NCBI GenBank assembly: GCA_964247055.1
Contig: OZ176051.1
Span: 13,268,001-13,332,000, forward strand
From: Paragordius varius
Taxonomy: Eukaryota > Animalia > Nematomorpha
Length of the DNA: 64,000 bases
Direction: 5' to 3'
Below, piece after piece: positions 28,588-61,790 of the stretch. Each line of letters begins with the position of its first letter. Position 1 is the stretch's first letter. The notes beneath the pieces are model-generated. The model did no database searches. It worked only from the letters and a program-made list of their open reading frames with translations, and was not told the origin of the DNA. The translations under genes and the position numbers were made by a program.

Positions 28588-31500
28588 TTAATATAATGTA
28601 TCTCTATTTAGCCAAAACACAGTTTCGAAGTTTGCTGTATGTGGAAACATATCAAATAAACGCATTTGTTTAATGCTAAATGGTTGACCGGGCAACCGTT
28701 TTGTACTGGGCCGAGTGAGATCAAACAAATTTTTACATGCTCCTTTCATTTCATCGCGCCTGGCATATTTGTCTTTGTGATTTATTCCACCTACATATAT
28801 TATATACAATTATCTTATTATACATTTTCACTTACATTTACTCTTATTTTTGCATCTTACAAAAAGAAAAAATTATTGATAAACCATTCAAAAGGGACGA
28901 ACATATGCATACAATAAAATGATGCGGTCATTTGTTTTTTTTTTTGCTTTAAAAATGTATCAAGAAATACTAATTAAGAAATTAGAGATTTATCGATTTA
29001 CGCACACTAAAAATAAAACTACAAAAAACATCGCACAATGACTGTAGACCAAAATTTTAAATTATTAATTTCAAATCTATAAGATTTTTTAATTAAGGGA
29101 CGAAAAACGTAAAGATATACATATAGAAACCAGTAATATTTCTCACTAGTTCAAATAAAGAATTCATCCCTTTTAAAAAAAGATTTTTAAATATTTATCT
29201 TTTGATACATGTATTAGTACTTATTTCTTGATCCTATACTATTAAATATTTGTATATATACATTAATCACTGTATTTAGATTACCCAAAAAATCACAGGA
29301 AATATAAAAGAGATGTGTTATGGATTCGCAACTTCGTATACAATCTATAACAGGCCGGGCTACACCATTACGGGGTGGATCCAATATGGCTATAAACATG
29401 GGTTTCTTATAACTTTCTCCTTTCACCCCTAAACAATATGGCATATATACATTTTGATCGTGTTAAATAAGATTTTGTTATGTGCGTTGGACATGATGTT
29501 AAAGAGACACCTCATAACGAGTTAAAAACAATTAATAAAACAAAATTCAATATTTTTCCATCCGTAGAATTATAAAAAAAGTGTTAGTAATTAAACTCCC
29601 TTGTAATGGGTTTTAGTACCCAAAATGTTTTATTGTATTTTTTGCATGTCCATTCCTATTAGGGTCATTTTTTCTTTATTCAACGTCCTTACCGATTCAA
29701 TTTCCTAAACGTATTTACATTTTAATTTTTAGCATATTATAAACGAATTGCCGGGGCTTTGTTTAACCATACCTGTGGCGCAAGGAAGGAGTGTTAATAA
29801 ACTTAGTAATAACATAAAAGATATATAAAAACATATATAAAAGTATATGAACCATATCGATTACATTATTTACAAAACAAGAACTAAACAGGCTCATACT
29901 GAGAATATGAGATTAGGATGTGTTTATCGGAAGTAGTGATTAGAAGAAGCAGAAGAGATAAAAATAATTATTTTAATTTCAGACTTCAGATAGAGAAAAG
30001 GAGTGATCTGGAAGAATACTGAAATGAAAAATGAATTATTGAGGAATCTAATAAAAGAGGTCGTAGTCAACCTCTATTCTAAACCATCAGAAGAGTAACA
30101 AATCAATGCCAACACCCAAACATTAAAATTAAGAATGATGAAGGAAAAATCTTGACGACGATAGAAATTAAAGAAAGATGGGAAAGTTACACCAAACAGC
30201 TATATAGTGCGCACCCAGGAGCAAACTGTGATAGACGAATATATAGGAATGTGGATGATGAGTTATGTATTTTGGAGGTAGAAGTGATAAAAGCTTGAAA
30301 ATCAATACCAATAAGGAAAGCCTCTGGAATAGATAATATTCCATTGGAACAAACGATATACCGTAATCAGTTATAAATAGATTGTCTAAAAAAGTATGGG
30401 AGTCAGGTTGGCCAAAGGACTGGCAAAATTGACCGTTTATCCCAGTGTTTAAAAGGTAATAATCAAATTGTGAGAAGTATAGAAACATAGCTCTCATCAG
30501 TCATTATGCAAAAATTTTGGAAATCATCCAGAACAGATAACATCATATGATAGCCAGAGAGATTCCAGATGTTCTAGCAGGGTTTATTTAATACAGAGAG
30601 TGTTGCCTTTCACCATCCTTGTTTAGGATTTTTACAGAAATGATCATGAGAAAAGATGAAGGTACTGAAAGCCTAAGAATAGGGGGGAAGGATAACAATC
30701 TAAGATTCGCAGATGATACGACGCTGAGCGCATAATGTAGTAAGTTTTAATAATATAATAAGGTTAGTAAGCGAAGAAAGTAATTATGAACTAAACCGCA
30801 ACTGTAAGAAAACCAAAGTTATGAGTTTATCAAAAAACAAACCTAATATAACCGATGACACTTTAGTAGAAGTAGTAAATAAAATCCTATTCTTAGGCTC
30901 TTTAATAGATATTATTCGATCCTCCACGTCAGATATTACTCGCCGCATAGCATTCGGAAAGCAGTTGCGAACAAGTTAAAAATTTATCGAAAAGATTTAA
31001 CTATGTTAAAAGTGAGAGTATATGCATGGTTTTTCCGGTAACGACTTATGAAAGTTGGTTAAAACTGAAAAAGAAGAATTTCGAAATAAAGGTGGTCTAC
31101 AAGGTTAATGAAAAACAATAGAAGAAAAATTAAATATTGAGTGTAAATTAATGAGTAATAAAAACTAAGTTTATGTACATAGGACATATTTTAAGAAGTA
31201 CATCCCTTAAGAAGTTTTGAGAAAGTTGAGGAAAAAAAGGAAGACTGATGTTAAGGTGGCTGAATGAAAAGAAGCTGTTAAATTTATAAGTAAATTAAAG
31301 AAAATAGCACGGGAAAAATACAAGGAGCGAATATTTTTAATTTCCAAGGAGAAGAACTCGACCTAAAGAAAACCTACCTATCTAAAAAACTCATCAATCA
31401 AAAAAATAAAATCTTGTTAATAGATTTCATGTTGCGAATATTATATCGATACCTACATTCATAGTAATTATGTGGGGAGTCTATTGGAAATAAATTTTAT

Positions 31501-34500
31501 TAAAATAAATCAAATTATGCCCCCAAAACGTAAGATATTTAAAAGTGAATTAATATACCATTTATAAGAGTTTTATCCAATAAAAGACATGGTAAGTATG
31601 TTTCAACATTTCCACAATGATATGAGGTTATGGATTGCAGACCTAAATCATTTAACAAAAAGAGCCATATATAAGGGTGTGCGTGTGTGTGTTAATTGGC
31701 GGTTAGAAAATGTTGGTATTTTGATGCATCTTTGAATAAATGCATTCATGTTTTATGGTACTTTATAACAACAAAACAATTGTGCAATTTACGTGTTTAA
31801 AGAAAAATATCATAAGTAAAATATTGACATTTCATGACCATTTAGGGGTTTCTGTACCCACGTGCGATTTCATATTGGAATATTTGAAAAATATATTTAA
31901 AATATTGGGCCTAGCCTTTAAGCCGCTTGATGTTATTTTTTTGCAAAACAATACCATATTAGAGGAGAAATTCTTATCTCAAACTTTGTGGCCGACTTAT
32001 TGAGTTTTTATATGCTAAAACAAAAGTCAAATAAATATATAGCTTTCAGGAAAAGCATCATATTATTTCATATGAAAGTTAGCTGTTTATTACTATCGGG
32101 TCTCGGAACCATTTTGGAATTCTATAAGTTAAAAACTGTAAAACAATATAAGTTTTTTTATCAGCTAATGGAGAGCAATCATATTAAATTTTTAACTAAA
32201 ACAACCTTGAAAACATATAATTATAAATTCCTCAAAACATAGGGTGGGGTGATGAAAAAAAAACTTTTCGACTTGACTTGCAAGTTTTTCACGTCATGGC
32301 TTTTATGTGATAAGAAAAATTTAACAATAGAGAACTTAAGTCAAGCAAGATGATTTTGAGGAGATAAAAAATCATGTGATCAAGTAAAACTTATAAATTT
32401 TGCAAACAGATTTTAAAATATGGATAAAATTATTTTGAGACTATTTATGTATCTAATTTACGCTTTATATGTAATAAAACCTTTGATAATGATATAAATT
32501 GTTTATTTAATAAATTTTGGCTAATTAACCTATTTTAGAAAAAATCTTAACAATACATATAAAAATATGCTTAATATACACTAGACAACAAATTTTGACT
32601 TTTACTGCCATTCTTGTAAATTTAAAATTTATTTCATTAAAGTACATAATTAGTATATCTGAAAAGAAAATTGGTCTAGCACCCAAGAATTTTTTTTAAA
32701 TCAGAGTTTATCGATAATTTTTGGCCCGATTTAACATGAAACTCGAAATCTTGAAAATTAAAAGTTTTAGATATAAAACCATGTTTTTGATATCATTCGA
32801 AAGAGCGCAAAAAACTGTATCTTTTAAATGGTAGATCTCATTTAAATCAATCGGATGTAAAAGTTATTTGGGTTTAAATGGTCGAAATTTTTACTACTTT
32901 AAAGTCAAATATTTTCACAGACAAACTAATTTGAAAATCATATAAAGTATATTATATAATTATTAGGGTTATATTAGTATTTAATTAAAAAAATGTTTGA
33001 AGCTCTTGCTTTTTTAATAAAAATTATTATTATCATAAATATTTTATTTAGTGGATACTAAAATGTATAGTTATAACTGTAAATTTATTAGATAAAGGCT
33101 ATAAAATATCAAAAATACCTCAAACTTTGTTTTTATTCTTAAAATTTTTATCAGCCTCGTAACGAAAATAAATTAATATTGATGAAATGTTAATTTTTAA
33201 AAAACAAAAAACCTAAAAATGGCTGTTTTGAGGACATAAAAGCAATAAAAAAATAATCAAAAAAACTTTCTTATGTTATCGTTTTTGGACATTCATCACC
33301 ACCTAGACAAAGTTTAAGATAGTTTCATCCATAAAATAAATTAATTAAAAAAATGATCTCGCTTCGCGCGTTTGTCGTTCTTTGTGTCCAATATTAACTG
33401 TCGATGTAATACATATTAGTATGCATTTAATAGAGTTTTTATTACTCTTACGAATGATATATTACAAATGGGGATTACTTTTATTTTTTTAAAGAACATT
33501 TTTTAGTAATTTGATAAAGATGGCGCATAATCAAAAAAATAAAATTTTACAAAATTTTTATAAAGAGTTATTTTATTTCAGATTTACTGTTAAAATGATA
33601 ATAAATATCAGAAAATGAAAAAACTCGAATGGCAGAAAAATTTGTTGTCCAGTGATATCAATTCCGTGAACTAGCAAAAAAATTGATTTTATTTCTTAAA
33701 ATTGTTAATCAAATATTAAAAAATTTCAAATCATCGTGTAATAAACGCTAAAGGTTACTTCACTATTAATTTAAATAAGAATTTTTTTAATTATCAATTT
33801 ATTTCGAATGTAATCTTGATGATTAATTAAAATAATAATATGTTATATTGTATAAGCATCTTCCCATTATGTTTGCAACTGGACTCCTAACAAAATGAGT
33901 ATTGTGTTAAAATAATAGAGAGTGTTTTAAGGGCGAATGGTATAATCAAAATTATTACCTGGTTCAATATTTAAAAAAATCTATAATATTAAATAAGATA
34001 GGTAATGCATATTGGATTAGTTGTTTATCTTTTTATTTTGGCTAAAAATGATCAAAATAATTTCCGTAAAATTCGAATTGGGCAAAAAATGCAAAAGACT
34101 TGACTTAAGTGTTTTTTTTATCACCGATCTTCAAGTGTATACTTGCTAGCTTAAGTGAACTTGCTCAACTTGCCACGCTTGACTTACATGTCAAGTGCGA
34201 CTTTTTTATCACTTCACCCATAATATTCCATATAAAATTAAAAGGTGCTAAGTGTGAATAAAAAATTTTTTTAAATAACTTTAATTATGTAAAAATAACC
34301 GTTGATTTCAGAATTTATTTTAGCGTCACATATGGCCGATGAGCAATTATCGATACCAAGGACGTTTGTAACTGCGGGCATTTGCTATCACATAAAAATA
34401 ATTGAAATTTTATGCCTAAAAGATTGTATAAATGCCTGAAAAATATATAATGCAAAAGTCGTACCATAAATGCCTGAAACAGGAAAATATCACAAATATA

Positions 34501-37500
34501 CAGTAGCGTATGACATAAAACAATTTTAGTCCATAAAAGAGTAATAAAATGTTTTTTTTAAAAAATAACAAGGGGATATTATGGATATGTATGCATACAA
34601 CTAGGCTTGTTTAAAAAAACTATTCTTATGTTTTATGCCATACGCTACTGTAATAGATTACATTCAACATCCCTTAAAATATGTAATACAAAATAGATAA
34701 TTTGAAAGATTTCAAACATAATCTATATATTTATAAAAATGGAAAATGCTGGCTTTGTGATCTGGTACAGGAAAACCGGTAGACCCAATCGAATCCAAAC
34801 TTAGAAAAAATATATCATTTATGAATGCCCCGACAATAGCTTCGCCCTTTTTTTGAAATAGGCCCCCAGTTCGGGCAAAAATCGTGTCTTTGAGACAATT
34901 TTCCGGAGAACGTGTTGGACCATTCATTTTCAAATATAATTTTTGTTTACTTATTTTCGATTGCGTTGAACATAGTCGAGCCACATTTTTGATTTAGGCC
35001 CTCTTTTTACCCGCTCCCCCCGTAAAATGTCACCTTTTTCAAAAAACAAAGTCCACAAAAATAATATTTAAATCGATTTTTCGCCCTAGGTATGAGACCG
35101 TAAAAATTCAATATGGATTACACGTATTCCCTGTTAAAAAGCAAAAATTTTAGTCAAGCGTTTATTTAATGATAGCTGCTGGGTAAGGAGCTACCCGCTA
35201 AAAACTGATTCCTTATGTAACTTTGTGATCTGTTTCCGAAAAACCGGTGAACCCAATAAAATCCAAATATCGAAAAAATATAATCTTTAATAAATGTCCC
35301 GACAATAGCTTCGCCCTTTTTGGAATTAGGTCCCCAGTTTGGGCCCACCCCGTGTGAAAAATGGGTTACAATTTTTTGGAGAACGTGTTGGACCATACAA
35401 TTTCAAATATAATTTTTGTTTACTTATTTTTGATCGCACTGAACATAGTCGACTCACTTTTTTGATTTAGGCCCTCTTTTTACCCGCCCGTAAAATGCCA
35501 TTTTTTAAAAAAAAACAAAGTCCACAAAAATTTTTTGATTGTATTTTTCCCCCAAGTAAACAATATATACCATTTACACTTCAAGAGTGTCCTTGAACAA
35601 TTCAAGTTGGTCCTTGAACAGTTCAAGTTGGTCCTTGAACAATTCAAGTTGGTCCTTGAACAATTCAAGTTGGTCCTTGAACTAATTCAAGTTGGTCCTT
35701 GAACAGTTCAAGTTGGTCCTTGAACAGTTCAAGTTGGTCATTAAAATTTATAAATTTTGATTTAACCATAATTTTTGTTTTTATTTAATTATTTATTAAC
35801 CTAATTTTCTTTATTTATTATATATTTATTTATTTAAAAATAAATTTTTTTATTGAAAAACCACTTTTTATGTTTAAAACTATTTTTTTTCAATTGAACA
35901 AAATTATTGACTTTTAAATGTTTTTAATGAAAAATTTTAATTAATAACCCAGAAAACTTATATATTTTTTCATTTCGTGTTAAAATCTTATAAATATCTA
36001 AATTTATTTTGAGAAATTAATAAAGATATACGGTTTTTCAAAGATTAAAAGTTGATATCGATTTGAAATTTATGTTAAATAATAGAAAATAGGTTAAAAA
36101 CAATAAAATAGACGAATTATATTCGATTTGATTGATAAAATTTAAAAACAAAACAAAAAAGTTAAAGGACCAACATGTATTGTTCAAGGACCAACTTGAA
36201 TTGTTCAAGGACCAACTTGAACTGTTCAAGGACCAACTTGAATTGTTCAAGAACCAACTTGAACTGTTCAAGAACCAACTTGAATTGTTCAAGGACACTC
36301 TTGAAGTGTAAATGGTATATTATTATGAATGCACCGTTTTAAAATTCCTATAAATTCATTTTTAAAGAATGTTTCGAAATAATCCACATATGTGGATCAT
36401 TTTATTGTCCCTTATTTCAAATAGCCCCCCCCCCCCCCTACCCCAGAAGTCCGAAGGACTTCCTCGTGCTGCGTAGCAGCACGAGATTTACGCTAGTAGG
36501 AATTATAAAATCATATATATAAAATTTTTGTTTGATAAACCTTAGCTATGTATTGTCCTATGGTACCAGCTCCACAACAAAGATCTAAAATGGTAAAAAA
36601 TGGTTGTCCAGTTTCATTTGTTTTTGGACTTGAATAAGGCATAGAAGACAGAATGGTCACCAAGTATTTTAGTAATAATTCGTAAACACCGGTATTAACT
36701 AATTATAAAGAGGTAAAAATGTTTTTTTTATTTGTGGTATTTTAAAACCTCACTTAAAAAAGCCGAAATTTCAAAAATATTAACTAATTGAAATATTCGA
36801 CTTATCAACACTAAAAATCTATAATAAACAACTCATGATTCAACTAAATAAAAAAATGATGATATGGACCTAAAAATATGATTGGCAATTATTGACTTAT
36901 TTTTTTTGTTATAACTACCAAAAAAATAACTAAAATCAGTGAAAGTTATTTATAAAAAGTGTTTAAAAAGTTACCTTGGAAAAAAGATAATGGTGATATT
37001 TTAAAGGTACAGACTTTGCCAATTCTCGAATCTACATGCGTTAAATTGTGACAAGATTCGCCAAAGTTTTGATTAGGTATTAAATTTTCAGTATTTAGCC
37101 CTAATATTAGATTATTAACAAATCCTTACATAACATTTCATATATCATAATACGATATATTAGTGACAGTTTAAGATAAGATTGCAAATCGAATTCTCTA
37201 ATTCTGTGAGTGGAAAAAGTTAAAAAAAGTGTGGTTTTTACTTAAGGAAAAAAATTATTTAAACTAATCAAAAATATAACTTTACTAGTTGGATTATCCT
37301 AAAAATATCGGAATTTACCAACCAATAAAAACACAAAATTTGTTTTAAGGATGAATTTTAAACAATTAAACACAAAAAAAGTTTATATTAATATATACCA
37401 TTCATGCTTAAATTCATTGATACTTGTATTGAATCTGTTCCGTAAATATGTATAAGTCCATTTTCATTGTTAATATTATTATTGCTTTCAACATTGTTTT

Positions 37501-40500
37501 TCTTGTGTAATACTGAATGCTCCAACAATATATAAAAACTTGTAATAAATTTCTTTATATCAGAGTTTTCATTAATTTGATCATTGGAAAAAATGTATTT
37601 TTGGAAGTAATCACAGAGAAATTGGACCCCCACTGAAGACGACGACTGTAAACAAATTAGTTTAGTTATAAGGGCAAAAATAAAATAAATTATTTTATAT
37701 TTTCCTCCATATATCTATGCTCAAGATGTATATCGATTACACTTTTAAAATTAAGGATAAATTATATTGGTGTTTTTGGAAAAACGAGGTATTTACGTTA
37801 ATCCCTATAATTATAATAACGATAATTTTTGAGTTACTTTTTATATTTAAAGAAGAATTTTATGGGAAAATACTTTATAGGGAAAAAACTTTTGAGAATG
37901 AATTTTAGACAAATAAGGAATTTTTACGTTTTCAAAATAATCCTGATTAATATGAAGTATAGCCATACACTGATTGAAAGATTCATTTTCTTTACATAGG
38001 AAATTGTTTGTTGTGAAATCTAATAATATGATTATATATATATATCACTTTTGCAGTACACCCATTATTTATTGTGGTAAATTGTTCTTTTTTTCCATTA
38101 TATGCGCCCATATGGTGTTAAAAAAAGTAATTTTTAAAAATTTAATGAACACATGAAAAACATTTTAAAACTTCATGACCTATTACTTTTTTGTCGTAAT
38201 TAGCGTATTGAGGTAGTTTAATATCCTAGAGCTCATTTTGTAAATAAACTATGGTTTTAAAAGTTATTTTAGTTAAAATTGAATTAACAAACATTGTTTA
38301 ACGCATTGGATAAAAACTAAATTTTTTACAGTTATCATTTCTAAAGTCTAAAATTGGTACAGTTCCAAAACAAAATCGAAACATTCTGATATTAAAATCA
38401 AAATATATCAAGTTTTTGCTGGTAAAATGTAATTTGAAAACATTTTAAAGTTAATTCTTTAAATTTCTTACCATAATAATTTACCTGTTGTGTTAGAAAT
38501 TAAAAAAAGAGAAAAAAATGATGGCGAAAAGTTTGAATTTTTACATTTTTAATTTGTATTTTACACCTAAAATGCTAAAAAAAGCTATTTATACCATAAA
38601 TCCTTTTAGGATATTCAAATTTTAAATCGCTTTGGGGTATAAAACTACATTGAAGCGTTAAAAAAAAGTTCATTTAATATCTAAAATTTTATAATTTAGT
38701 AATCTTTATGTGTTAACTAATAATATAAACAGAAATATGCAATAATAAAAATTAAATTTTGTGATTAACAAAAATTTATATAAAATCAAACTTGTCCGTA
38801 ACGTTAAAGTTTTCCAAACACCATCTCGTTTAACGTAATCATAAGGTGGATATTTAGCTAACTCAGGATCGGTTTGAAGTAAATTTTGAAATATCTAAAA
38901 TATAATAAGGTTTTTTTTGAAAAGTTTTACAAATATATATACACATGTATTTATATATCGCTCAGTTTCGTCAAATAATTATATTAATATGAAAAAATAC
39001 AATTAGCAACAAATAAAAATATAGTAAAAATAACCCTGACCACCAATTTCATGCGATCATTAACATGAACACAATCCGTGATAGGTAGGACATTTTGAGA
39101 ACCGTTTTTGTATGCACTTTCACGAAAACCTATAATTATCGTTGTTAATTCAGTATTTGAATGTATTTTTTCTGTATATAATTTTTGTGATACGCTTAAA
39201 CAATCATTTTTATTGTTTTCAAGCCAAATATTTTTGCCAACAGTAAATTGGCATTTATTTCTATATTCCGTGACTAGAGGAGAGGGTACTATCTCGATTT
39301 CACAGTCTACTAGCGCGACTGTATATTGATAGTGTGGCAATTCTGTTTTACTCAGTTTTTCATACTTTGCCAGGGCCTTATGAAATGCTTGTGATTTCGA
39401 CTTTGGAGAATTAAATAAAATAGTTTAGCAATATTGTATTGAAATAATGGAAAAAATATATTTATATTCAAAATGACTAAGAGAGAGAAAAATATCACAA
39501 TTAATGTTCAATACCTTTTAGGATAGTTTAATATACCAAAGCGATTTAAAATTTGATTATCTTAAAAGGTATTTAGGAGGTATTAAGCCGAATTTTAATT
39601 ATGCATTCTATAACATTTTAGGCAAAAAAATTGTAAAAAGACCTCATCTCAAACTCATTCGCCACTATTTCTTTTAATTTAAATCACTATAACAACAAGC
39701 AAATGTATATTATGGTTAAAAATGTTAATAATTAACTTTAAAAAGCTTGGCATATTACTAGCAAAATCTTGATATATTTTGATTTTAATATTAGCCGTTC
39801 GTTTCAGTTATGTTTGAGGCTGTCCTTTTACACTCTAAAAGTCACAAAACTGTAAAAAATTAAGCGTTTTATTTGACACGATGACAATGTTTGATAATTA
39901 GTGAACTTAAATAACTTTATAAAGTGTATTTTATTTTTAAAATTAAGCTCCGTAATATAAAACTACCTTAAAAGATAAACTAGGAAAAAAAGTGAAAAGG
40001 CAATAAAGTGTTATTTCAAAAGTAATTTCGTAGATCTATATCCAATAATTCTTTAATCTGTAAATACTCATGCCCATTAAAAAAATTGGCAAATTATAAA
40101 TTCGAAATTGATATTTCCTACACACCGTATTAGCTACAATGTTTAACCTCAAATTATAAAAGAGCAATAAAATAAATTATTTTTTAATTTTATGAATTCC
40201 AAAAATTTTTCTTCAAAAATATCAAAAATTAGCACTTGTAATTGTTTTTCATATGGTATGGCATGTAATGGCGTTACTATATCATCGACATTCACCGAAG
40301 TGTTTTCTTTTATAATTTTATCCTTTTGGGGATTAAAAAATGGATCTGCGCTTGGTTTCGATTCCTGCATAAATAAACGAAATTCTTATCGTTTAAGAGA
40401 TATAAAATAATTGTTCAAATAATTAATTACCTTGACTATCAAATTTTTATTCTTCCATTTTAGACCGTTTAATTTTGATATTGCATTTTTTCTATCTTCT

Positions 40501-40779
40501 TCATTTCTAAAAATTTACGGTAAATATACTGAAAAGTGACAAATATGTGAGGATTTTTTGTCTTTATAATTTTAATTTTGTGTGATAAAACATTGTTTGA
40601 ATCCAAAAATGTTTTGATATCTGAATAGCCAAAAACCTTTGGTAAATTTTCTAAAATTTAGATAAATAAATTAAACTAATTTCGATTTTAAAAATCTCGG
40701 ATGTAAATTTATTTTTATCCTGAATATAATCAAAGGCATGAGAAATGGTTTGATCAACATTGTTTAAATGCTCATTCAT
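28588..40779 (-). CDS. TRMT2A: tRNA (uracil-5-)-methyltransferase homolog A-like (RRM + TrmA/RlmD catalytic domain), about 645 aa, 14 exons
   Basis: Exons on minus strand: 40779-40677, 40650-40530, 40506-40431, 40364-40236, 39400-39035, 38894-38792, 37989-37928, 37645-37399, 37031-36975, 36698-36541, 34384-34300, 31642-31559, 29428-29285, 28790-28588. Total 1938 nt, all GT-AG. Motifs: FTSEIFKIEI, PYEKQL, YRNKCQFTVG, ISPLSFFQVN, DLCCGAGTIG, GID, DPPRNG, YISC, DMFPHT.NFE. Start codon (40779 or 40797) and last acceptor are uncertain. Confidence 0.9.
29740..31370 (+). mobile_element. Heavily degenerate RTE LINE (RT region), antisense in TRMT2A intron 12
   Basis: Remnants of IKERWE.Y.KQLY, KASGIDNIP.E, WPKDW, YR.IALISH, RFADDT.L, KTKVM and GHILR. 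ORF track 30168..30497 is its antisense shadow. Confidence 0.8.
32242..34219. mobile_element. GGG-terminal non-autonomous DNA transposon, second copy, expanded by nested insertions
   Basis: gggtggggtgatgaaaaa...ttttttatcacttcaccc. Terminal ~300-400 bp at each end match 24277-25456; the middle is unrelated. Confidence 0.65.
34501..34650. mobile_element. Tc1/mariner-type MITE (TA target-site duplication)
   Basis: TA|CAGTAGCGTATGACATAAAACA ... TGTTTTATGCCATACGCTACTG|TA. Confidence 0.85.
34722..36496 (+). mobile_element. Non-autonomous Helitron (interrupted by a TIR element) in TRMT2A intron 10
   Basis: A|TCTATATATTTATAAAAATGG 5' end; 3' hairpins then CTAG|T. Internal duplication of about 470 bp. 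Confidence 0.9.
35570..36315. mobile_element. CCATTT-terminal foldback-like element with 7 + 6 tandem 21-bp subterminal repeats
   Basis: ta|CCATTTACACTTCAAGAGTGTCC(TTGAACARTTCAAGTTGGTCC)7 ... mirror image x6 ... GGACACTCTTGAAGTGTAAATGG|ta, with an AT-rich core. Confidence 0.93.
40507..40529 (-). other. 23-nt spliceosomal micro-intron (TRMT2A intron 2)
   Basis: GTATATTTACCGTAAATTTTTAG. Removal gives FVTF-Q-NEEDRKNAI, collinear with the TRMT2A RRM. Confidence 0.88.
40651..40676 (-). other. 26-nt spliceosomal micro-intron (TRMT2A intron 1)
   Basis: GTTTAATTTATTTATCTAAATTTTAG. Removal gives FKIEI-K-NLPK. Confidence 0.88.
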
Positions 40780-42397
40780 ATTATTATATGACCACATAAA
40801 ATATTTTATATCTAAAAAAATATGGGTGATGGCCAGTATGGTTTAAGAAAAATGTATCCCATTCGAACTACAGAATAAAATTATACGATTTTTTTTTGAT
40901 AAACTGACAGTGATTAATCTATTTATTACCGGTCGGTTTCAGCCATCCCATATAAATATAGGATTTAAAAATTGAATAACTGTAAGTTTGAAATATCTTT
41001 ACCATTTCATTATCTTTTAACTTTCCTAGTTTACCTTTTGGGCTAGTTTATTTCGTAGAGAAACAACAGTTTCGAAAGTTTTTTTAGTTAAAATTAATAA
41101 TTAAACATTGTTGTCATGTATAAGATAGAAAAGCTTATATTTTTTCCAATGTAAAATTTGGACAGCACCAAATCACGATTGAAAGGAACAGCTAATATTG
41201 AAATAATAATATATCAAGGTTTTTCTGGTAGAATGTAGCCTAAAAGTTTCTTAAAGTTAATTATTTACATTTTTTAATTTTAATATACATTTATTTGTCT
41301 GTTGTGTTAGCGATTTATAGAAAAAATGGCGAAAGTTTAGGTTCTACATTATATTTGAAAATTTTTTGAATAATGATTCTAAATGACTAAAGTAAGCATA
41401 TTTTTGAATTTGGCTTAATACCTTAAATACTTTTTAATATTCAAATTTCAAATGGCTCTGGCATATTAGACCAAAAAGTAATGGAGTGTTGGAATATATT
41501 TTGGCTCATTCATTATTTACTTGATTGTTTTTAATAGATTGGCGGTGACTTTACTTCTAATTTTTAGTCCCTCGGTTTTATCCCCTTATAATATTGTAGC
41601 AATATTTAGGGAAATGTGTTTTTTATTTAAATGGAATATGAGAACCAAAAATCTCTAATTTTTTTCTATTTGAAAATGAAAACGTTATATGCTAAATTTT
41701 GATATCAACTAAAAATATTTTTAAAAATTGCATGCTTTTCTTTAAAAATTACGTTTAAGCGTACTTTATATTATTTTAAGGTGATGAAAACGGTAGAAAA
41801 ACGCTTTAATATATATATTCGATGATGCTAAAAGTACCTCAGTATTTAAATAAAATACTCGTTTTTCTTCAAATATATGGTAAATATTGATTGTGTGTTT
41901 TTTTTAATTTATCAAAATTTGAAAGCAATGTTTAACATTGTGGAATTTTATATAAAAAGTGTTTTTATAATATCATAGAGCTTTTTTAAACCGTTTCTAT
42001 TGCAAAATAGTATGAAGTATGCTTCAACAAAACTTTGCTAAAATTTAGATTTTATAAAAAAATATGCTTTTTTAAAAAATATTCGTAATATCAAAGTTTT
42101 CAATATAATTAAAAAAATCGTGCAATTTCAGCATTTTTGCGTTTATTATAATGAGCACCTCGCCCATTATAAAAGAAAAAAAATTTGCCAAATTCGACAT
42201 CAAAAGTTTAGAAACTATTTTTGCTTTGTAGTGTATGATATATTTTAGTAGTCATATTCATCAAAAAAATATATAAGGAAAACGTGCTTTTGTCTTCAGA
42301 TATGGAGAAGTTATTATAAAAATGTTAATTACGTTCTTATATCATTTGCATGGGCCAAAACCAAAAGCACCATGATGATCCTGATACATTTTAGGAA

Positions 42398-44391
42398 TCT
42401 ATATATTTATAAAAATGGAAAATGCTGGCTTTGTGATCTGGTACAGGAAAACCGGTGGACCCATTCAAATCCAAACATTGAAAAAATATAATCATTAATC
42501 AATGCCCCGACAATAGCTTCGCCCTTTTTTTGAAATAGGCTCCCAGTTCGGGCCCACCCCGTATGAAAAACAGGTTTTTTTTGAAAACAGAAGTCCACAA
42601 AAATCGTGTCTTTGAGACAATTTTCTGGAGAACGTGTTGGACTATTCAATTTCAAATATAATTTTTGTTTACTTATTTTTGATTGCACCGAACATAGTCG
42701 AGTCACTTTTATGATTTAGGCCCTCTTTTTACCCGCTACCCCCGTAAAATACCATTTTTTTCAAAAAACAAAGTCCACAAAAATAAATTTATGATTGTAT
42801 TTTTTTGCCCAAGGTATGAGACTGTGAAAATTCGAGAATGTTTTTTCGTATTACCTGGTAAAAGACAAAAATTTTAGTCAAGCGTTTCTATGATGATAGC
42901 TGCTGGGTAAGGAGCTACCCGCTAAAAACTGATTTTTCATGTAGCTTTGTGATCTGTTTCCGGAAAACCGGTGAACCCAATCAAATCCAAATATCGAAAA
43001 AATATAATCATTAATAAATGTCCCGACTATAGCTTCGCCCTTTTTTTGAAATAGGCCCCCAGTTCGGGCCCACCCCGTGTGAAAAATGGGTTAAGTCAAT
43101 TTTTTGGAGAACGTGTTGGACCATTCAATTTCAAATATGAATTTTGTTTACTTATTTTTGATCGCGCTGAACATAGTTAAGTCACTTTTCTGATTTAGGC
43201 CCTCTTTTTACCCGCTACCCCCGTAAAATGCCATTTTTTTCAAAAAAAACAAAGTCCACAAAAATAATTTTTTGATTGTATTTTTTTGCCCAAGGTATGA
43301 GACTGTAAAAATTCGAGAAGGTTTTTTCGTATTACCTGTTAAAAGGCAAAAATTTTAGTCAAGCGTTTCTTTGATAGATGCTGAGTAAGGAGTATCTATC
43401 ATATGTATAGCATGTTAAAAGATATATGGATATTAAAACATTATTTATGGTAATCTATCTATATATTTATGAAAATGGAAAATGCTGGCTTTGTGATCTG
43501 GTACAGGAAAACCGGTAGACCCATTCAAATCCAAACATTGAAAAAATATAATCATTAATCAATATCCCGACAATAGCTTCGCCCTTTTTTTGAAATAGGC
43601 CCCCAGTTCGGGCCCACCCCGTATGAAAAACGGGTTTTTTTTGAAAACATAAGTCCACAAAAATCGTGTCTTTGAGACAATTTTCTGGAGAACGTGTTGG
43701 ACTATTCAATTTCAAATATGAATTTTGTTTACTTATTTTTGATTGCACCGAACATAGTCGAGTCACTTTTTTGATTTAGGCCCTCTTTTTACCTGCTACC
43801 CCCGTAAAATACCATTTTTTTCAAAAAACAAAGTCCACAAAAATAAATTTATGATTGTATTTTTTTGCCCAAGGTATGAGACTGTAAAAATTCGAGAATG
43901 TTTTTTCGTATTACCTGGTAAAAGGCAAAAATTTTAGTCAAGCGTTTCTATGATGATAGCTGCTGGGTAAGGAGCTACCCGCTAAAAACTGATTTTTCAT
44001 GTAGCTTTGTGATCTGTTTCCGGAAAACCGGTGAACCCAATCAAATCCAAATATCGAAAAAATATAATCATTAATAAATGTCCCTATAGCTTCGCCCTTT
44101 TTTTGAAATAGGCCCCCAGTTCGGGCCCACCCCGTATGAAAAACGGGTTTTTTTGAAAACAGAAGTCCACTAAAATCGTGTCTTTGAGACAATTTTCCGG
44201 AGAACGTGTTGGACCATTCAATTTCAAATATGATTTTTGTTTACTTATTTTCGATTGCGCCGAACATAGTCGTCTCGCTTTTTGAATTTAGTCCCACTTT
44301 TTCCCGCTCCCCCCGTAAAATGCCATTCCCCCCCCCCCTCAGAAGTCCGAAGGACTTCCTCAGGCTGCGTAGCAGCACGAGATTTACGCTA

Positions 44392-47565: not shown

Positions 47566-49821
47566 TGTTACAATGATTCCTTATATCATTAGGAAATTCG
47601 GTTATTGCATTCACAAGGATAAAGTTGTCTGATTTAAACGTTGTTAAAGATAATAAGTATAAATAAAATAATTTGCACTCACAACCAAGGTAATATATAT
47701 TTTTAACGTAACAAGGCCAAAAGTGTATTATGCACTAAAAAAGAGAAGGATAATTTGCGGATAATAACCTTTTTAACATACCTTCTTAGCTTGATATCGG
47801 TCGAGTGGCTTTCGGGATCGAATCGGGTACCGGCGAGTCGTAGTAGGAGAAGTGTCACTTGTTTGCACGGGTGTATTCTCACTTGAAGGCGCACTTTCTG
47901 ATTTCGGATTCTCCTCGATGTTTTCAGGGGTTCTTATTTCATGTTCCGTGGGATGTTTTTGGAGGTTATTATCATTGTTGTTTAAGTTTGCAGATGATGA
48001 GTTAGGAATGCTGATTGATATTTCCGGGTTATCTAGATTTTTAGTCTTTTCCTCACTTCTCCCGTCTTCTCCTTCGGCCGACCAATCCATGCGATTCCTT
48101 AATTGATCAGCATGTTTGCGGATAATTTGTCATTGTCGTTGACATTGTACGATAACCATCCCGTTCTGTCGACGATTTGTCCCTCCCTCCAACCAGAACA
48201 CAATTCATTCTTAATATATACCTTTGGCCCCTTTTCAAACTCCTGCGGAATGTCGGGAGTATCCATGAATTCGTTGGGTTTCGTTTTCATCCATGTAAAT
48301 GGGCTTTGCATAGTTCTTTTTAAAAACAAATGCGCGGGGGTCTCCTTCGTGGAACTGTGATGCGTGTTTCGGTAAGCCCATAAGATTTGGTTTAATCTTC
48401 GCACTGGGTCTGCGGAAGTGGGGCTGACATTGAATGATGATTTTTTAGAGTGTAAATTACCCTCTCTACCAACCCATTTGTTCGGGGGTGGTAGGGAGCC
48501 GATGTTACGTGTTTTATATCAGAGGAAGCTAAAGTTCTCTCAAACTCCCCCGATTTAAAATAAGAGCCGTTATCAATAACCACCACTTTTGGGTACCCAT
48601 ACCGGCAAAAACAGGTTTCTAAAAACTTAAGAATATTACCTGTATTCACAGAGCGTAACGTCTCTACCTCCACCCAGCGGGTGCAATGATCAATTAGTAC
48701 CACCCAGTATAAATTGTCAATGGGTCCGGCGATATCTAGGTGGAGCCGTTCGCACATGGTTGTATGTTCCATTGATAGGTGGGATTTTCGGGTACATTTG
48801 GGCACAGCCTTTGGCAGTTTTGGCAACTACGCACCTATTTTTCGATATCTTGGCTCAACCCGGGCCAATAAACCTTTTCACGCCTTAATAGTTTCATGGC
48901 TTGTATTCCCGGATGGCCACTATGCAGTTATCTGAAAATATCTGGCTTAATTTTGTTTCAGGATTATTACCTGATCTCCCACAAATAATAGACCGTATGC
49001 ATGCTCAATTTCATTTTTTATTGCGATGAAAGGCTTGACCAGGGGGTCCGTCCAATTATTAGACCTTAGGGCTACTTTTAATTTTGCTATCGTAGGATCC
49101 TTTATAGACTCTTGATAGATAATTGCTCTATTTAAATTTATTGGACCAAATCAAATGAACATTTCTACTTTCATCGTCTTTCTCAAAAGCCATCGGCTCC
49201 TGGTTTTCAATGGGAAGTCTCGATAGGCAGTCAGCTATGTTTTCTGTACCAGGGTGATATTCTATGTTAAAATCGAAAACCGATGTTCTAGTTATCCAGC
49301 GTACTAGTTTACAATTATTAATTTTACTTAGATCTCTTTGAGGCCCAAATAGTTTCACTAGAGGTTTGTGGTCCGTTTGTATTATAAATTTTCTGCCATA
49401 CAAAAAAGTTTTAAACTTCTCTAACGCTATTAGGATAGCTTTTGCTTCTCCTTCAATTACTGAATAATTTTCTTCGGCCTGAGAGCATTTTTTTGACGTG
49501 TAGGCGATCGGGCGATTACCCGCTGTTGTATGTGATAAAATAGCACCGTATCCTAACATTGACGCGTCGGTTTCCAAGACTATAGGTAGTTTGGGACTAT
49601 ACGGATGCTACAATGATTCCTTATATCATTAGGAAATTCGGTTATTGCATTCACAAGGATAAAGTTGTCTGATTTAAACGTTGTTAAAGATAATAAGTAT
49701 AAATAAAATAATTTGCACTCACAACCAAGGTAATATATATTTTTAACGTAACAAGGCCAAAAGTGTATTATGCACTAAAAAAGAGAAGGATAATTTACGT
49801 ATGATAATAACACTTTTAACA
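47566..49821 (-). mobile_element. Ty3/gypsy (Mag/K02A2.6-like) internally deleted element: LTR-RNaseH-integrase-LTR
   Basis: Direct repeats 47566-47778 and 49606-49821 (TG...CA; 188 bp identical). RNase H: LETDAS..G.GAIL, EGEAKAI, TDHKPL, ADCLSR. Integrase: HLDIAGP, DNG..F, PYHP.TNG.VER. Gag, protease and RT are absent. Confidence 0.9.
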
Positions 49822-52649: not shown

Positions 52650-55495
52650 TTTTGTAAAGAGGGTAAGTGAGAGGGAGGGCAATGGCAAACCACCCTCGTT
52701 TTTTACTGCCAAAAAATAGTTTTACTATATGAACTTAACGCGACTTTTCAAAGTTGGATGCTGGAACGTACGCTTAACAGAAACCAAACTGGTGATAATT
52801 GAAAAGGAAATGGAAAGATTGACCTTAGATATACTGGATCTAACGGAAACCAAGCAAAGAGGTAGCGCGAAAGAAACGAAAATTATACATTGTTAAGATC
52901 GGGGAGAGATGACCAGAAATCAGAAGGCGTTGCAGTATTAATAAAAAACAAATTAAATAAAAGTCTCATTAGTTATACACCATATACACCCAGAATCGTG
53001 AGTATTAGGCTGAATGCCAAGCCACTTAAATTTACATACATAGTAGTCTATGCTCCTACGTCAAACGCTCCCAAAGACGACATAGAGGATTTTTATGCAA
53101 CGTTGCAAATAGTTTTGGATGAAACGAAGAAAGGAGATATGATTATCATAGGAGGGGATTGGAACAGCAAAGTTGGTAGAGGTAGAGTAGATCAAATAGT
53201 TGGCCCATATGGATTGGGAGAACGAAACGAGGCCGGGGAAGCACTGATCAATTTTTGTCAAGAAAATGAGATGATGATAACCAACACATGGTTTCCACAA
53301 CACAATAGGAGGTTATACACATGGACTTCTCCATGTGGTAAATATAAGAACCAAATTGATTACATAATATGTCCTCAAAAATGGAAAAGCTCTATAATCG
53401 ATACCAAAACAAGCAAAAGCAGCGATTGCTCTAGCGATCATGAGCATCTAGTAACCAAAATCAAACTTAAAATAATTAAAAATAAGGTTAAACAGATATA
53501 CAGATATGACACTCGAAACATTCCAAACAGTTTTAGAACAGAAACAAACGATAGATTAGAAAGATTGGACAATGAATGTAGCTCAGAACAATTATGGGGA
53601 ACGATAAAAAATGTTGTTAATGAAGTGGCAAAAGAAAAAGTGCAGAGAGTAAAGAGGAAAGATAACAAATGAATATCAGAAAAGAGTTTAGAGATTGCAG
53701 AAAAGAGGAGAAAAGCTAAATTAAGAGGTGATAATAAAATGGTAAAATTATATAACAAAGAATTTCAACGACAAACAAGGAAGGATTATGAAGATTTTCT
53801 TAATAAACAATGTCTGGAAGTGGAATTAAATAACAAAAAAGAATTAATGCAACCAATGTTCCAGAAACTAAAGCACATGACTCATAAACCTTTTATATAA
53901 TCCCAAAAGATTAAAAAAGAGAATGGCACCATATTGTGCAAACAAACAGATGTACGAGAAAGATGGAAGGAATACACCCAAAAACTCTATCAGGCTCCTC
54001 AAGCAAAAGTGTTGCAATTAAAAGAAGAAGAACGTGATCCAGATATATTAAGAGAGGTTGATTTAGCTAGCAATGGGATTAGACAATATCCCAATAGAGT
54101 TCATAAAAGCTATTCCTGTAGAAACGTTACACAAGTTATGTCAAAAGGTGTGGGAAACACGTGAGTGGCCAAACGACTGGACATCATCTGTATATCTCCC
54201 AATATACAAAAAAGGAGATGTACTCCAGTGCGAGAACTATCGGAACATATCTCTTATTAGCCACGCTAGTAAGGTCTTACTAAAAGTAATACAAAACAGG
54301 ATGCACAGTATCATACAGACAGAAATACCAGAAAATCAAGCCGGATTTATGAAGGGAAAAAGCACAAGAGACCATATCTCAAACATGAGAAGGATAATGG
54401 AAACATTAAAAGAGTTCCAGAAAGAATTATACATGTGTTTTATTGATTACAGACAAGCCTTCGATTCAATTAACTATGACTGCTTGTGGGAAACATTAAA
54501 GTTAGTAGGGGGATCGTCTCACTTAATAAGATTGATAGCTCTCTCTATGTAAAACAAAGAGCGATTATTAGAACATCAGCGGGGGACACAGACGAAATAC
54601 CTATCTTGAAAGGAGTCAGACAAGGGTGTTGCTTATCCCCTTATCAGTTCAATATGTGCACAGAAATGATAATGAGGATGTTGGATGGTAAAAATATTGG
54701 AGTAAGAATAGGAGGGAGAACAATCAATAATTTAAAGTTTGCAGACGATACCACTCTTATAGCTGAAAGTGCAAATGATTTAAAGGAATTGATTGAAGTG
54801 ATTCGAAAGGAAAGTTGAGTTGTGGTCTTAAGTTTAATCCTAACAAAACCAAAATATTATGTACAGGAAAAAAGCCTACAATCATTATAGAAGGAGTAGA
54901 AATAGAAATAGTTAAACAGTTAACGTTTTTGGGCGCAATAATTTCAGAGGATGGGTCTTCAACTCCTGACATCAGAAAAATAGGATTGGGTAGAGAAGCG
55001 ATGACCAAATTAATAAAGATTTGGAAAAACAAAAGCGTAGGAGTTGAAACCAAAAAAAGATTACTCTACTGTTTCGTTCTCACGGTCACCACATATGGAT
55101 GTGAGAGTTGGACTCTCAGAAAAAGGGACAAAGAAAGGCTCATGGCTTTTGAAAGGAGCTGCTGGCGTAGGATGCTAGGATACACCTGGAAGGATAAAAT
55201 TAAGAATGGAAATCTAACTTCAGAAATAAAACCTAAAACAAACATCCTGGAGATAATTCTAAAAAGAAAGTTAACATATTTTGGTCATGTCATGCGATCG
55301 AATTCTCTGGAGAAAGATACGATGTTTGGGAAGGTAGAAGGGCAAAGGAAACGAGGCCGACCACCGATGAGGTGGTTGGATACGATAAAAGAAGAGACCA
55401 AAATGACATTGAAAAGCTCAATATAGCGGTTAAAGATAGAAAAAAATGGAAAGAAATAGTTAAAACTATATCCAAAAAGTCGTTTACGACTTAGG
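52650..55495 (+). mobile_element. Near full-length RTE/BovB-like LINE (APE + RT), disrupted by a few frameshifts and stops
   Basis: 5' ggcaatggcaaaccac motif; WNVRTL, VYAPTS, GDWNSKVG, NQIDYI, SDH, WPNDW, YRNISLISHASK, GVRQGC.LSP..FN, FADD, YGCESWT, YFGHVMR, GRPPMRWLD. Confidence 0.96.
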
Positions 55496-56132: not shown

Positions 56133-57269
56133 TTATGGAGAAATGTGTATTTTGTGTTGTTGTCTACAAAATAAGATAATTACATATGGGACAATATAAA
56201 ATTTAAGTGTCATAAGAAAGAATGTTATATGTTCGACTAGTGAATTGCAACCGAGGCCAGGAATCCAATATTTGTATTTGTACACAATGACAACAGCATA
56301 CGGCAGTGTGGTACATAAATTTATTACGTTTGCAATAGTTATTATTTTAAGGTATCTTTTTATGCGTCCTTTAAGGGATTTTACACTTGGCCGAGCACTG
56401 TTTAATGATTGTCCATCATTATTTCGACTCCCAGAAACTATGATAGGTGATTTAAAGATGTTAGGGGATGTGTGGTCCTCACATACGCTTTTCGATGCAA
56501 TAGTATTAAAGGTAAATCTTGCGCTTTGGTTACGCATTATGCGAATTTTGAATTTGCGTATCGTTAAAACATTTATCATAATGATAAATATTTGGGGTAA
56601 GATTAATGTGCTAATTACGACAATCGGATTATATATACTAAGAAAATAAATGTACTTCACATTGAATGGTAATATAAAGTGATCAGATAATTTTAAATAT
56701 GCCTGGTGATCAAGTAACGGCTTTATCAAATCAAACCGAACCATAAAAAAATATGGTATAGTTATCAATATTGACACAATCCCTATAACATTTAATGATA
56801 CTTTCAAGCATTTTATATGCCTTTTATACAAATTATAGTATTCTATAGGGTAATGCAAAGCAATGTATATATCAATGTTCATTAGGGCTGCAATAAAGTT
56901 CGTTATAAAGTATAATATTAACTCTATCTTCCCAATTCTTCTCAGGATAATACCTGCATAAATATTAGGCGCATCGCGTAAACATTCATCACGTATCATA
57001 AAATAAATGTTATCGACTGAAAAGAGACTAATTATTACGCAAATAATACATAAAATATTTATATAAAAGCGGTATAAAACTTTAAACTTTTTTTTAATTT
57101 TGAAAATGTCGCATCTGGCATATGATAATCCTAATATGACAAGAGTAGCTCCAAATACACCGATAGGTAACAATATCATCATCATAATGGCTTGTACTTT
57201 TTGAAATTTTGAATGAGCTTGGTATTGCAATCTTGGCCTCGTATTGAGGAAGTGTAATGAAATGTTCAT
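56133..57269 (-). CDS. Intronless, divergent rhodopsin-like (class A) GPCR, 378 aa; peptide-receptor-like or chemoreceptor-like
   Basis: One uninterrupted ORF with seven hydrophobic segments, TM3 end MNIDIYIALHYP, TM5 LPQIFIIMINVL, TM6 INLCTTLP and TM7 FYIVPYVI. Confidence 0.85.
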   Translation of the reverse strand: MNISLHFLNTRPRLQYQAHSKFQKVQAIMMMILLPIGVFGATLVILGLSYARCDIFKIKKKFKVLYRFYINILCIICVIISLFSVDNIYFMIRDECLRDAPNIYAGIILRRIGKIELILYFITNFIAALMNIDIYIALHYPIEYYNLYKRHIKCLKVSLNVIGIVSILITIPYFFMVRFDLIKPLLDHQAYLKLSDHFILPFNVKYIYFLSIYNPIVVISTLILPQIFIIMINVLTIRKFKIRIMRNQSARFTFNTIASKSVCEDHTSPNIFKSPIIVSGSRNNDGQSLNSARPSVKSLKGRIKRYLKIITIANVINLCTTLPYAVVIVYKYKYWIPGLGCNSLVEHITFFLMTLKFYIVPYVIILFCRQQHKIHISP

Positions 57270-59989: not shown

Positions 59990-61790
59990 CTTTACGATTC
60001 CTATTTCAATAGTAATAAATTTATTCGGTGTAATGATAAGTTTTAAGTGTATTAAGACACTATTTTCATCTTATTGCTTAAATCGATAGTTATAGGGTGA
60101 TATGAACGATAATCATATATTAAATATCATAAGACAATTACAGAGGAAAAAAACAACGGTGTGATAATTAATTTTTTAACATACCTCCTTCTTTAAGCTT
60201 GATTCGGGCTTACGGAAACGGATCGGGTACCGGTGAGTCGTAGTTGGAAGCTTTATTTGTTTGTCTGGAAGCATTCTCACAAGAATTGACGCCGAATTTA
60301 GACTCTCGTTTCTGTTTTCAGAGGTTATTATATCGTGTTCGTGGGGTTGGGTTGAGGACGATGTATGAGGTAGCATGGCTATTGATGTGTGAGGTATCAT
60401 GGTAGATATTGCTGGGTTACCTAGATTCTTATTCTTTCCCCCTTTTATTCCGTCTTCTTCGGCAGACCCGTTTATGCTATTTTTTCATTGGCCAGCATTG
60501 CGAATAACTTTGCCAATGTCGTTTTTACGATAATCTCCTTTCTACTATTTCTCCCTCCCTCCAACCACTACACGATTCATTCTTAAGGTATATCTTTTAG
60601 CCCTTTTCAAACTCCTGCGGGGTGGAACTCATTGTGTTTGGATTTCATCCATGTTAAAGGACCTACTTCGTTTTTAAAACAGATGCGCCGGATGAGATGG
60701 ATGTTGCGACGGGTCCATAGAACTTGATTCAATCTTCGTTCCGGGTCGAATGGGAAGGCTAGTCATTAAATAGTGATTTTTTAAGGTTAAAATTACTCAC
60801 TTAAAGACCATGTTCGGGGGTGGTAGGGAGTAGAAGTTGCATATTTAATATTAGAGAACGCTTAAGTTCCTTAGAATTCCCCGATTATGCCATTATCGGT
60901 AACCACCAGTTTCGGGTACCCAAAACAGCAAAAACATGTTTCTAAAAACTTAATGATAATACCAGTATTGACCGGTAACATTTCTATCTATACCCATAGG
61001 GTGCAATGGTCAATTAACACCACCGAGTAGAAGTTGTCAATGGGACCGGCAATATCTAGGTGTACCCTTTCCCAAAAAGTGGTAGAGCATTTCATTGATA
61101 GGTGGAATTTCGGGTACATTTGGGCGAAGTTTTTGACAGTTTTGGCAGCTGCGCACCCACCACCCTTCAATATCTTGGCTTAACCCAAACCAAAAAACCT
61201 TTTCACGGTCCTGCTTGTGGCCTCACTTCGTCCGGAATTATTAGCCTATCGACAAATAATAACCCATATGTATCCTCAATTCTTTTATCCCGATAAAGGG
61301 TCTAACCAGTGGTCCGTCCAGTTATTAGACCTCAGCCCTACTTTCAATTTTGATATTGTAGGGTCATTTGATTCTTGATAGATAATTTCTATACAATTTA
61401 CCTCGCGTGGCCAAATTATCTGAACCTCGAACTCTTCGTCTTTTTCCAATGTCGTGATTTTCCATGGGGAGCCTCGAAAGGCAGTCAGCTATGTTTGCTC
61501 TTAGGCTGTATTCGATATTATAATTGAACAAAGACGTTCTTGTTATCCAAAGCAACAGTTTAATATTATTAATGTTACTTAAGTCACTTTGCGGCCCAAA
61601 TAGTTTCACTAAAAGTGTATGGTGAGTTTTTATTATAAATTTTCTGCCATACAAAAAAGTTTTAAATTTCTCTAAAGCTATTTAGATTACCTTCGCTTCT
61701 CGCTCAATTACTGATTAGTTTTGTTCAGCTTGGGAGCATTTTTGAACGTGTAGGCGATCTGTGGTATGCCATCTCTTGTTCTATGTGATA
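59990..61790 (-). mobile_element. Second Ty3/gypsy RNaseH-integrase remnant with a putative 3' LTR
   Basis: YGRKFII.T.H..L, ADCLSRLP, HLDIAGP and ..RYPIR.RKP...KEVC*, running into TGTTAAAA at 60181. LTR far boundary is uncertain. Confidence 0.85.

Follow-up and report, generated by a model that had tools for sequence, protein, structure and literature searches.

How short can an intron be in an animal gene, and can a gene carry such introns without being broken by them? A floor of about 30 nt has long been assumed for animal introns, and as of September 2026 published exceptions come only from the myxobolid cnidarians and one dicyemid (PMC13644364). A further case may be provided by the hairworm Paragordius varius. 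In the window, by which we mean the whole 64,000-nt stretch of its DNA analysed here, a gene on the minus strand is interrupted near its 5' end by two segments of 26 and 23 nt, and it must be asked whether these are removed by the spliceosome, belong to a dying gene, or are errors in the DNA. The window is AT-rich (~20-38% GC) and holds intron-bearing eukaryotic genes together with many transposon ORFs. Based on the evidence below, both segments are very probably genuine U2-type GT-AG introns of a functional, single-copy gordiid TRMT2A gene, shrunk to their present size in this lineage.

Judged from its sequence, the gene is TRMT2A, the tRNA m5U54 methyltransferase with an N-terminal RNA-binding domain. 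Compared with the PDB (177,635 sequences), exon 2 has a single match, the human TRMT2A RNA-binding domain at residues 13-50, ending at FVTF, while the top match of exon 3 is the fly TRMT2A-type domain 7pv5 at residues 51-71. A phmmer search of the PDB with exon 1 gave no match, its conserved tail being too short; by eye, the TSEIFKIEI at its end resembles TSEIFKVEV and TSEIFKLEL, the first residues of chains 7pv5 and 7ntn. The exons match the solved TRMT2A RNA-binding domains in order, and the collinearity with this domain that had been proposed from the letters of the window alone is borne out. When the 120-residue exon at 39400-39040 was used as a HMMER query, it retrieved a Gordionus protein whose cluster includes the nearest full-length relative, RefSeq XP_065325003.1 (605 aa), annotated as a Gordionus 'tRNA (uracil-5-)-methyltransferase homolog A-like' protein. 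The N-terminus of the latter matches structures of TRMT2A RNA-binding domains with E values of 1e-10 and 1e-8, and tblastn aligns the protein with the window in 13 blocks that run collinearly from 40734 to 28603 and contain no stop. These blocks carry the motifs YRNKC, FFQ.N, ILDLCCG.GTIG, DPPR.G and SCD in the order of the Gordionus TRMT2A-like protein. The locus thus has both an N-terminal TRMT2A-type RNA-binding domain and the motifs of a C-terminal SAM-dependent m5U methyltransferase domain. Pfam searches with single exons, which are too short for this purpose, returned weak methyltransferase matches for the SAM exon only.

The gene comprises ~14 exons and 13 introns and extends over ~12 kb of the minus strand, from 40779 to ~28600 (Table 1); a second in-frame ATG at 40797 is an alternative start for exon 1. 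From 5' to 3' its introns measure 26, 23, 66, ~850 (835-871), 140, 772, 282, ~370, 276, 2156, 2657, 2130 and 494 nt, the positions of the intron 4 acceptor and the intron 8 donor being uncertain. Eleven of the 13 are thus 66 nt or longer, with a maximum of 2.7 kb, and several of the long ones are filled with transposon copies. Because both micro-introns lie at the 5' end and the later introns range from 66 nt to 2.7 kb, the genome has two size classes of intron rather than uniform compaction.

Table 1. Exons and introns of TRMT2A in the window, micro-introns of three further P. varius genes, and their counterparts in Gordionus.
Feature	Position	Strand	Length	Phase	Description	Gordionus counterpart
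TRMT2A exon 1	40677..40779	minus			ATG at 40779; ends ...TSEIFKIEI + base 1 of Lys codon	exon 1 ends at the same residue
TRMT2A micro-intron 1	40651..40676	minus	26 nt	1	after KIEI + one base; GTTTAA...CTAAATTTTAG (ends TTTTAG)	38 nt, phase 1 (L001 3129-3166)
TRMT2A exon 2	40530..40650	minus	121 nt		..K NLPKVFGYSD...HIFVTF Q..; central RNA-binding domain	
TRMT2A micro-intron 2	40507..40529	minus	23 nt	2	after FVTF + two bases; GTATAT...CGTAAATTTTTAG (ends TTTTAG)	42 nt, phase 2, after FITF + two bases (L001 3291-3332)
TRMT2A exon 3	40431..40506	minus	76 nt		NEEDRKNAISKLNGLKWKNKNLIVK; RNP1-side end of RNA-binding domain	
TRMT2A intron 3	40365..40430	minus	66 nt	0	after LIVK; GTAATT...TGCAG	41 nt, phase 0
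TRMT2A exon 4	40236..40364	minus			ESKPSADPFF...VTPLHAIPYEKQLQ; donor GTGCTA begins 40235; from tblastn and junction listing; no intron within	extra 46-nt intron within
TRMT2A intron after QL(K/Q)			long	0		long, phase 0
Remaining TRMT2A	28600..40235	minus			~10 further exons; from tblastn of Gordionus proteins and junction listing	
TRMT2A SAM-binding exon	36699-36541	minus			ILDLCCGAGTIG	
TRMT2A DPPR exon	~29414-29285	minus				
GRK2 micro-intron	21948-21922	minus	27 nt			
GRK2 micro-intron	21844-21818	minus	27 nt			
GRK2 micro-intron	21743-21716	minus	28 nt			
PSMB3 micro-intron	L017 1460-1482 (G000:C2:12477942-12477964)		23 nt		directly after ATG	43 nt, same spot (L029 804-846)
PSMB4-like micro-intron	L009 1698-1724 (G000:C1, ~6948961-6948987)		27 nt		GTAAGT...ATAG; two in-frame TAA	

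If the 26 and 23 nt stay in, no two of the three coding pieces for the RNA-binding domain share a reading frame. The unspliced frame of exon 1 terminates at the very TAG that closes micro-intron 1, and keeping micro-intron 2 causes a frameshift with a stop at ~40471. Neither length is divisible by three, and excision brings the frame back. Removing exactly these nucleotides yields FKIEIKNLPK and FVTFQNEEDR, as the original prediction had claimed; KIEI-K-NLPK and FVTF-Q-NEED were recovered by direct reading of the minus strand. The choice of junctions was assessed by taking every in-frame, stop-free GT/GC..AG join between homology anchors as a candidate and scoring it against the orthologue. 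At junction 1 just two joins exist, and the 26-nt join scores 158 versus 102 for a 56-nt join. At junction 2 there are four, topped by the 23-nt join at 177, with the others (20, 23 and 38 nt variants) at 154 or less. The existence of these further joins lends some substance to the idea that TRMT2A is spliced at a neighbouring donor or acceptor (56 nt at junction 1, 20 or 38 nt at junction 2) or with exon 2 skipped. We consider this improbable, since the alternatives not only score lower but also leave the conserved KIEI-K-NLP and FVTF-x-NE stretches with residues lost or gained, and they match neither Gordionus nor the mollusc Lottia in intron position and phase. Indeed, the spacing of KIEI-K-NLP and F(V/I)TF-x-NE across the junctions is the same in Gordionus, fly and human. 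Given the other in-frame joins at junction 2, minor use of alternative sites is possible there alongside the 23-nt excision.

Short insertions that disturb a reading frame may also originate in sequencing or assembly, and an indel error in the raw reads was the concern attached to the original prediction. No indel was found across 40507-40676: contigs from three DNA runs of two studies (X3, X4 and X5), representing at least two samples, span 40225-40896 ungapped and differ from the assembly by only 2-7 substitutions. A search for sequencing runs that contain the locus returned DNA runs only, and X6, possibly an RNA run, gave no contig over it. An assembly indel error over the two segments is thereby ruled out, and the probability left to spurious insertions as an artefact is negligible. 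The sole variant listed in the exons, T>C at 40643, is a synonymous leucine change (TTA>TTG) in the proposed frame of exon 2. Among the contig joints listed for 36300-40900, none represents a DNA form that lacks the 26-nt and 23-nt pieces. TRMT2A is single-copy in the 110.6-Mb genome assembly, and no retrocopy that could serve as a natural cDNA is present in it, either for TRMT2A or for the GRK2 5' end, each of which occurs once. A search of protein databases by way of the Gordionus proteins returned no transcript-derived P. varius TRMT2A protein. The same holds for a transcript-derived P. varius protein of PSMB3, a highly expressed gene, for which the best protein-database match is that of Gordionus (72%).

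A different reading takes the locus for a decaying pseudogene in which the two pieces are frameshifting insertions that happen to resemble introns, and neither the transposon insertions that riddle the long TRMT2A introns nor the negative outcome of the search for RNA runs would be out of place for such a gene. We nevertheless regard it as very unlikely. All 13 exon blocks remain open over 12 kb and collinear with the orthologue, the locus is the sole copy of a conserved housekeeping enzyme, its one listed exon variant is synonymous, and both pieces begin with GT and end with TAG. Moreover, the site and phase of each piece coincide exactly with those of an orthologous intron in a relative, as becomes apparent from the corresponding genomic DNA of Gordionus montsenyensis (Gordionus sp. 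m RMFG-2023, GCA_954871325.2).

In Gordionus, both micro-introns of P. varius TRMT2A have a longer counterpart at the same codon and in the same phase, and further intron positions are shared downstream (Table 1). The short Gordionus introns are like those of P. varius in their GT..TAG ends, AT-richness and clustering toward the 5' end of the gene. A wider comparison is afforded by TRMT2A of the mollusc Lottia, which has a phase-2 intron after FVTF, as at micro-intron 2, and this position must consequently be old. After KIEI, Lottia has no intron but carries one 12 codons further on. The position of micro-intron 1, present in Gordionus and not in Lottia, is accordingly shared at least among gordiids. 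The coincidence of both pieces in codon and phase with undoubted Gordionus introns makes it very unlikely that they arose by chance, in a pseudogene or as non-spliceosomal elements.

The last of these possibilities deserves a separate word. Unconventional introns of XBP1 measure 23-26 nt, and the two TRMT2A segments are of the same size, which is a numerical coincidence only. Removal by RNA cleavage of the IRE1/XBP1 or tRNA-endonuclease type, or by ciliate-like somatic DNA elimination, is exceedingly improbable. Both pieces are bounded by GT..AG and T-rich toward the 3' end. IRE1-type cleavage calls for twin stem-loops with C-N-G loops at both junctions, and direct reading reveals such C-N-G motifs at neither; TA..TA ends are likewise absent. 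Furthermore, the homologous sites in Gordionus hold ordinary GT..AG introns of 38-42 nt, all DNA contigs of P. varius keep the pieces, and no joint that skips them is among those listed.

TRMT2A is not the only P. varius gene with introns of this size. At the N-terminus of GRK2, on the minus strand of the window (21716-21948), three GT..TAG pieces of 27-28 nt separate highly conserved exons. Two more genes were encountered through a Pfam proteasome search of the genome. In PSMB3, a 23-nt intron directly follows the ATG, so that the first coding exon consists of this one codon. In Gordionus this spot is occupied by a 43-nt intron, and the N-terminus of the protein, MSNIFSYNGG, is identical. The remaining P. 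varius PSMB3 introns measure 66, 80 and ~660 nt. In a PSMB4-like gene, the Pfam PF00227 match passes straight through a 27-nt intron. Altogether, seven micro-introns of 23-28 nt are found in four genes (TRMT2A, GRK2, PSMB3 and PSMB4-like). In Paramecium, there is selection against introns that are divisible by three and free of stops. All three P. varius micro-introns with a length divisible by three, in GRK2 and the PSMB4-like gene, would bring in a stop within two codons if retained; in the two 27-nt introns of GRK2 the stop is the second codon. An ab initio scan for GT..AG segments that bridge ORFs did no better than control dinucleotide pairs, the counts being equal whatever the length; this kind of scan has no power in AT-rich, TE-rich DNA.

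The signals in these introns are sparse. The 5' sites of the seven micro-introns are reduced to GTW, and all seven end in TAG. The motif T[AT]AAT, which was picked post hoc, occurs within the last 15 nt of six of the seven, compared with 2.0 expected by shuffling (P ~0.002); the GTAAA put forward in the original prediction as the branch-point candidate falls in this motif. In both TRMT2A micro-introns, TAAAT precedes a run of four or five T and the closing AG. For a U12-type intron, the 5' sequence RTATCCTT and a TCCTTAAC branch site are expected; the segments read GTTTAATT and GTATATTT, with no CCTT motif, and this type was rejected.

As read from the letters, such signals would fit conventional U2-dependent splicing by intron definition. 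In this scheme, recognition would proceed with minimal signals, including a 5' site of barely more than GUW. The branch adenosine would reside in a UAAAU- or UUAAU-like element, ~12-17 nt into the intron and only 4-9 nt short of its 3' end, and in the TRMT2A micro-introns the candidate adenosines lie 13-20 nt from the 5' end and 6-7 nt from the 3' end. Downstream of the branch, the 3' site, UAG preceded by a few U's, could be read much like the nematode-type acceptors recognized by U2AF. Retention would be self-policing, as each micro-intron provides either a frameshift or an early in-frame stop. An mRNA that keeps a micro-intron would contain a premature stop and would probably be degraded, and these stops and frameshifts would be consistent with surveillance by nonsense-mediated decay.

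How P. varius came to have introns below 30 nt is suggested by the sizes at shared sites. The short introns of Gordionus measure 38, 42, 41 and 46 nt in TRMT2A and 43, 45, 39, 46 and 41 nt in PSMB3. All nine, from two genes, therefore lie within 38-46 nt, as opposed to 23-28 nt for the P. varius micro-introns, and among the introns of the two species compared in these genes, those below 30 nt are found in P. varius only. Conversely, some P. varius introns (66, 80 and ~660 nt) are longer than their Gordionus orthologues. Being shorter at some shared sites and longer at others, the introns of P. varius have diverged in size in both directions.

Nematodes, the sister phylum, offer a first point of reference. 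Introns of C. elegans have a modal length of ~47 nt, a UUUUCAG acceptor and a weak branch consensus, and the nematode minimum is ~40 nt. The P. varius micro-introns are similar in having a T-rich acceptor that ends in AG, no long polypyrimidine tract and a weak branch consensus, but they are about half the minimum length in nematodes.

Among animals, introns below 30 bp are known from Myxobolidae and Dicyema only, with more such lineages predicted (Hadjez et al., Mol Biol Evol 2026, PMC13644364); the ultra-short introns of Dicyema japonicum were described by Lu et al. 2019 (PMC6736024). The P. varius micro-introns share many features with those of myxobolids and Dicyema (PMC13644364): they are GT-AG introns within 22-28 nt with a 5' signal of about GTa/GTW, reduced splice-site motifs and a few A's shortly upstream of the AG as the likely branch, and their positions are common to longer introns of relatives. 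Both also come from parasitic lineages with low BUSCO scores. On the other hand, nearly all introns of myxobolids and Dicyema are tiny (median 22-27 bp), their genomes are compact and TE-poor, and the animals are microscopic and simplified, whereas in the large-bodied ecdysozoan P. varius the micro-introns cluster at the 5' end and stand beside TE-filled introns of 66 nt to 2.7 kb. Thus, while P. varius has introns below 30 nt with reduced motifs in four genes, a median below 30 nt in a compact genome is not seen in TRMT2A and PSMB3, the few genes that bear on this point. Outside animals, introns of ~25 nt occur in Paramecium and Nyctotherus and of 15-16 nt in Stentor (Bondarenko & Gelfand 2016, PMC5014332; cited in PMC13644364). 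Those of P. varius resemble them in size range, in AT-richness and in the frameshift or early stop that follows retention; ciliates differ in having a uniform population of tiny introns and different genetic codes.

From this perspective, it is a tentative but real possibility that gordiids, or at least P. varius, have come independently, as the third animal lineage to do so, to possess a standing class of introns below 30 nt. Ancestral introns of ~40 nt would have shrunk to this size once the lineage had parted from Gordionus, and they would coexist in the same genes with multi-kb, transposon-laden introns. If so, these would be the first introns below 30 nt from an ecdysozoan, and from any animal that is large and anatomically complex, and minimum intron length would be a fast-evolving property of the splicing machinery instead of a fixed constraint on animals. 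With one gene and one site in two sizes, P. varius and Gordionus (38-46 nt) provide a natural comparison, which could reveal how a 5' site, a branch and a 3' site fit into 23 nt and which trans-acting factors changed. Our search of the literature returned no work tying hairworms to intron length, Cunha et al. 2023 lying outside this comparison, and introns are nowhere mentioned in the Gordionus genome preprint or in a comparative hairworm preprint. The contribution of the present analysis is exact evidence at orthologous sites, with sizes from a sister genus and independent confirmation of the DNA.

Short introns of this kind also have practical consequences. The default minimum intron length of AUGUSTUS is near 40 nt, and gene finders with such a minimum would be predicted to break these genes and miss the exons concerned. 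In the BRAKER annotation of Gordionus, TRMT2A is split into CAK9293216-CAK9293220, with partial proteins of 253, 216, 545 and 315 aa in place of the one 605-aa RefSeq protein; the 545-aa protein starts inside the RNA-binding domain and lacks the N-terminus. Similarly, one BRAKER model of Gordionus PSMB3, CAK9292106, begins 14 residues late, at MAGKNC. Short 5' introns may break gene models in the hairworm phylum. If gordiids do form a lineage with introns below 30 nt, part of the 'rampant loss of universal metazoan genes' ascribed to hairworms, and of their ~70% BUSCO scores, could be an annotation artefact due to predictors that do not accept such short introns. As predictors would break short-intron genes and BRAKER fragments TRMT2A of Gordionus, the claims of gene loss in this phylum need to be rechecked.

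Several repeats and open frames in the window are worth recording in their own right. A very high-copy short element occurs at 38148-38455, 39688-39995 and ~41000-41500, with copies upstream of TRMT2A as well as inside its introns 4 and 6. At this element contig depth is 100-fold higher, and 38426-38431 is linked to 39728-39748, on the opposite strand, in many contigs, which suggests inverted copies of a MITE/SINE-like repeat. Extreme depth is also seen at 36300-36600 in all DNA runs. Another repeat, with an open frame of ~100 aa (…SKISKQKLYLKLNSPTRSPENCLKDTIF…), has at least five copies within 34715-35400 and 42410-44240, one group lying inside TRMT2A intron 10 and another immediately upstream of TRMT2A. 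Intron 10 further contains tandem 21-nt repeats at 35577-35700 and 36165-36340, which read LEQFKLV and ELFKDQL in opposite orientations. Partly degraded ORFs resembling non-LTR retrotransposons (endonuclease/RT) and Gypsy elements (RT/integrase) are found at 15072-17769, 52866-55423, 48102-49607 and 60179-61681. Finally, a single open frame of 378 aa on the minus strand at 56136-57269 encodes several hydrophobic stretches and is possibly an intron-less membrane receptor gene.
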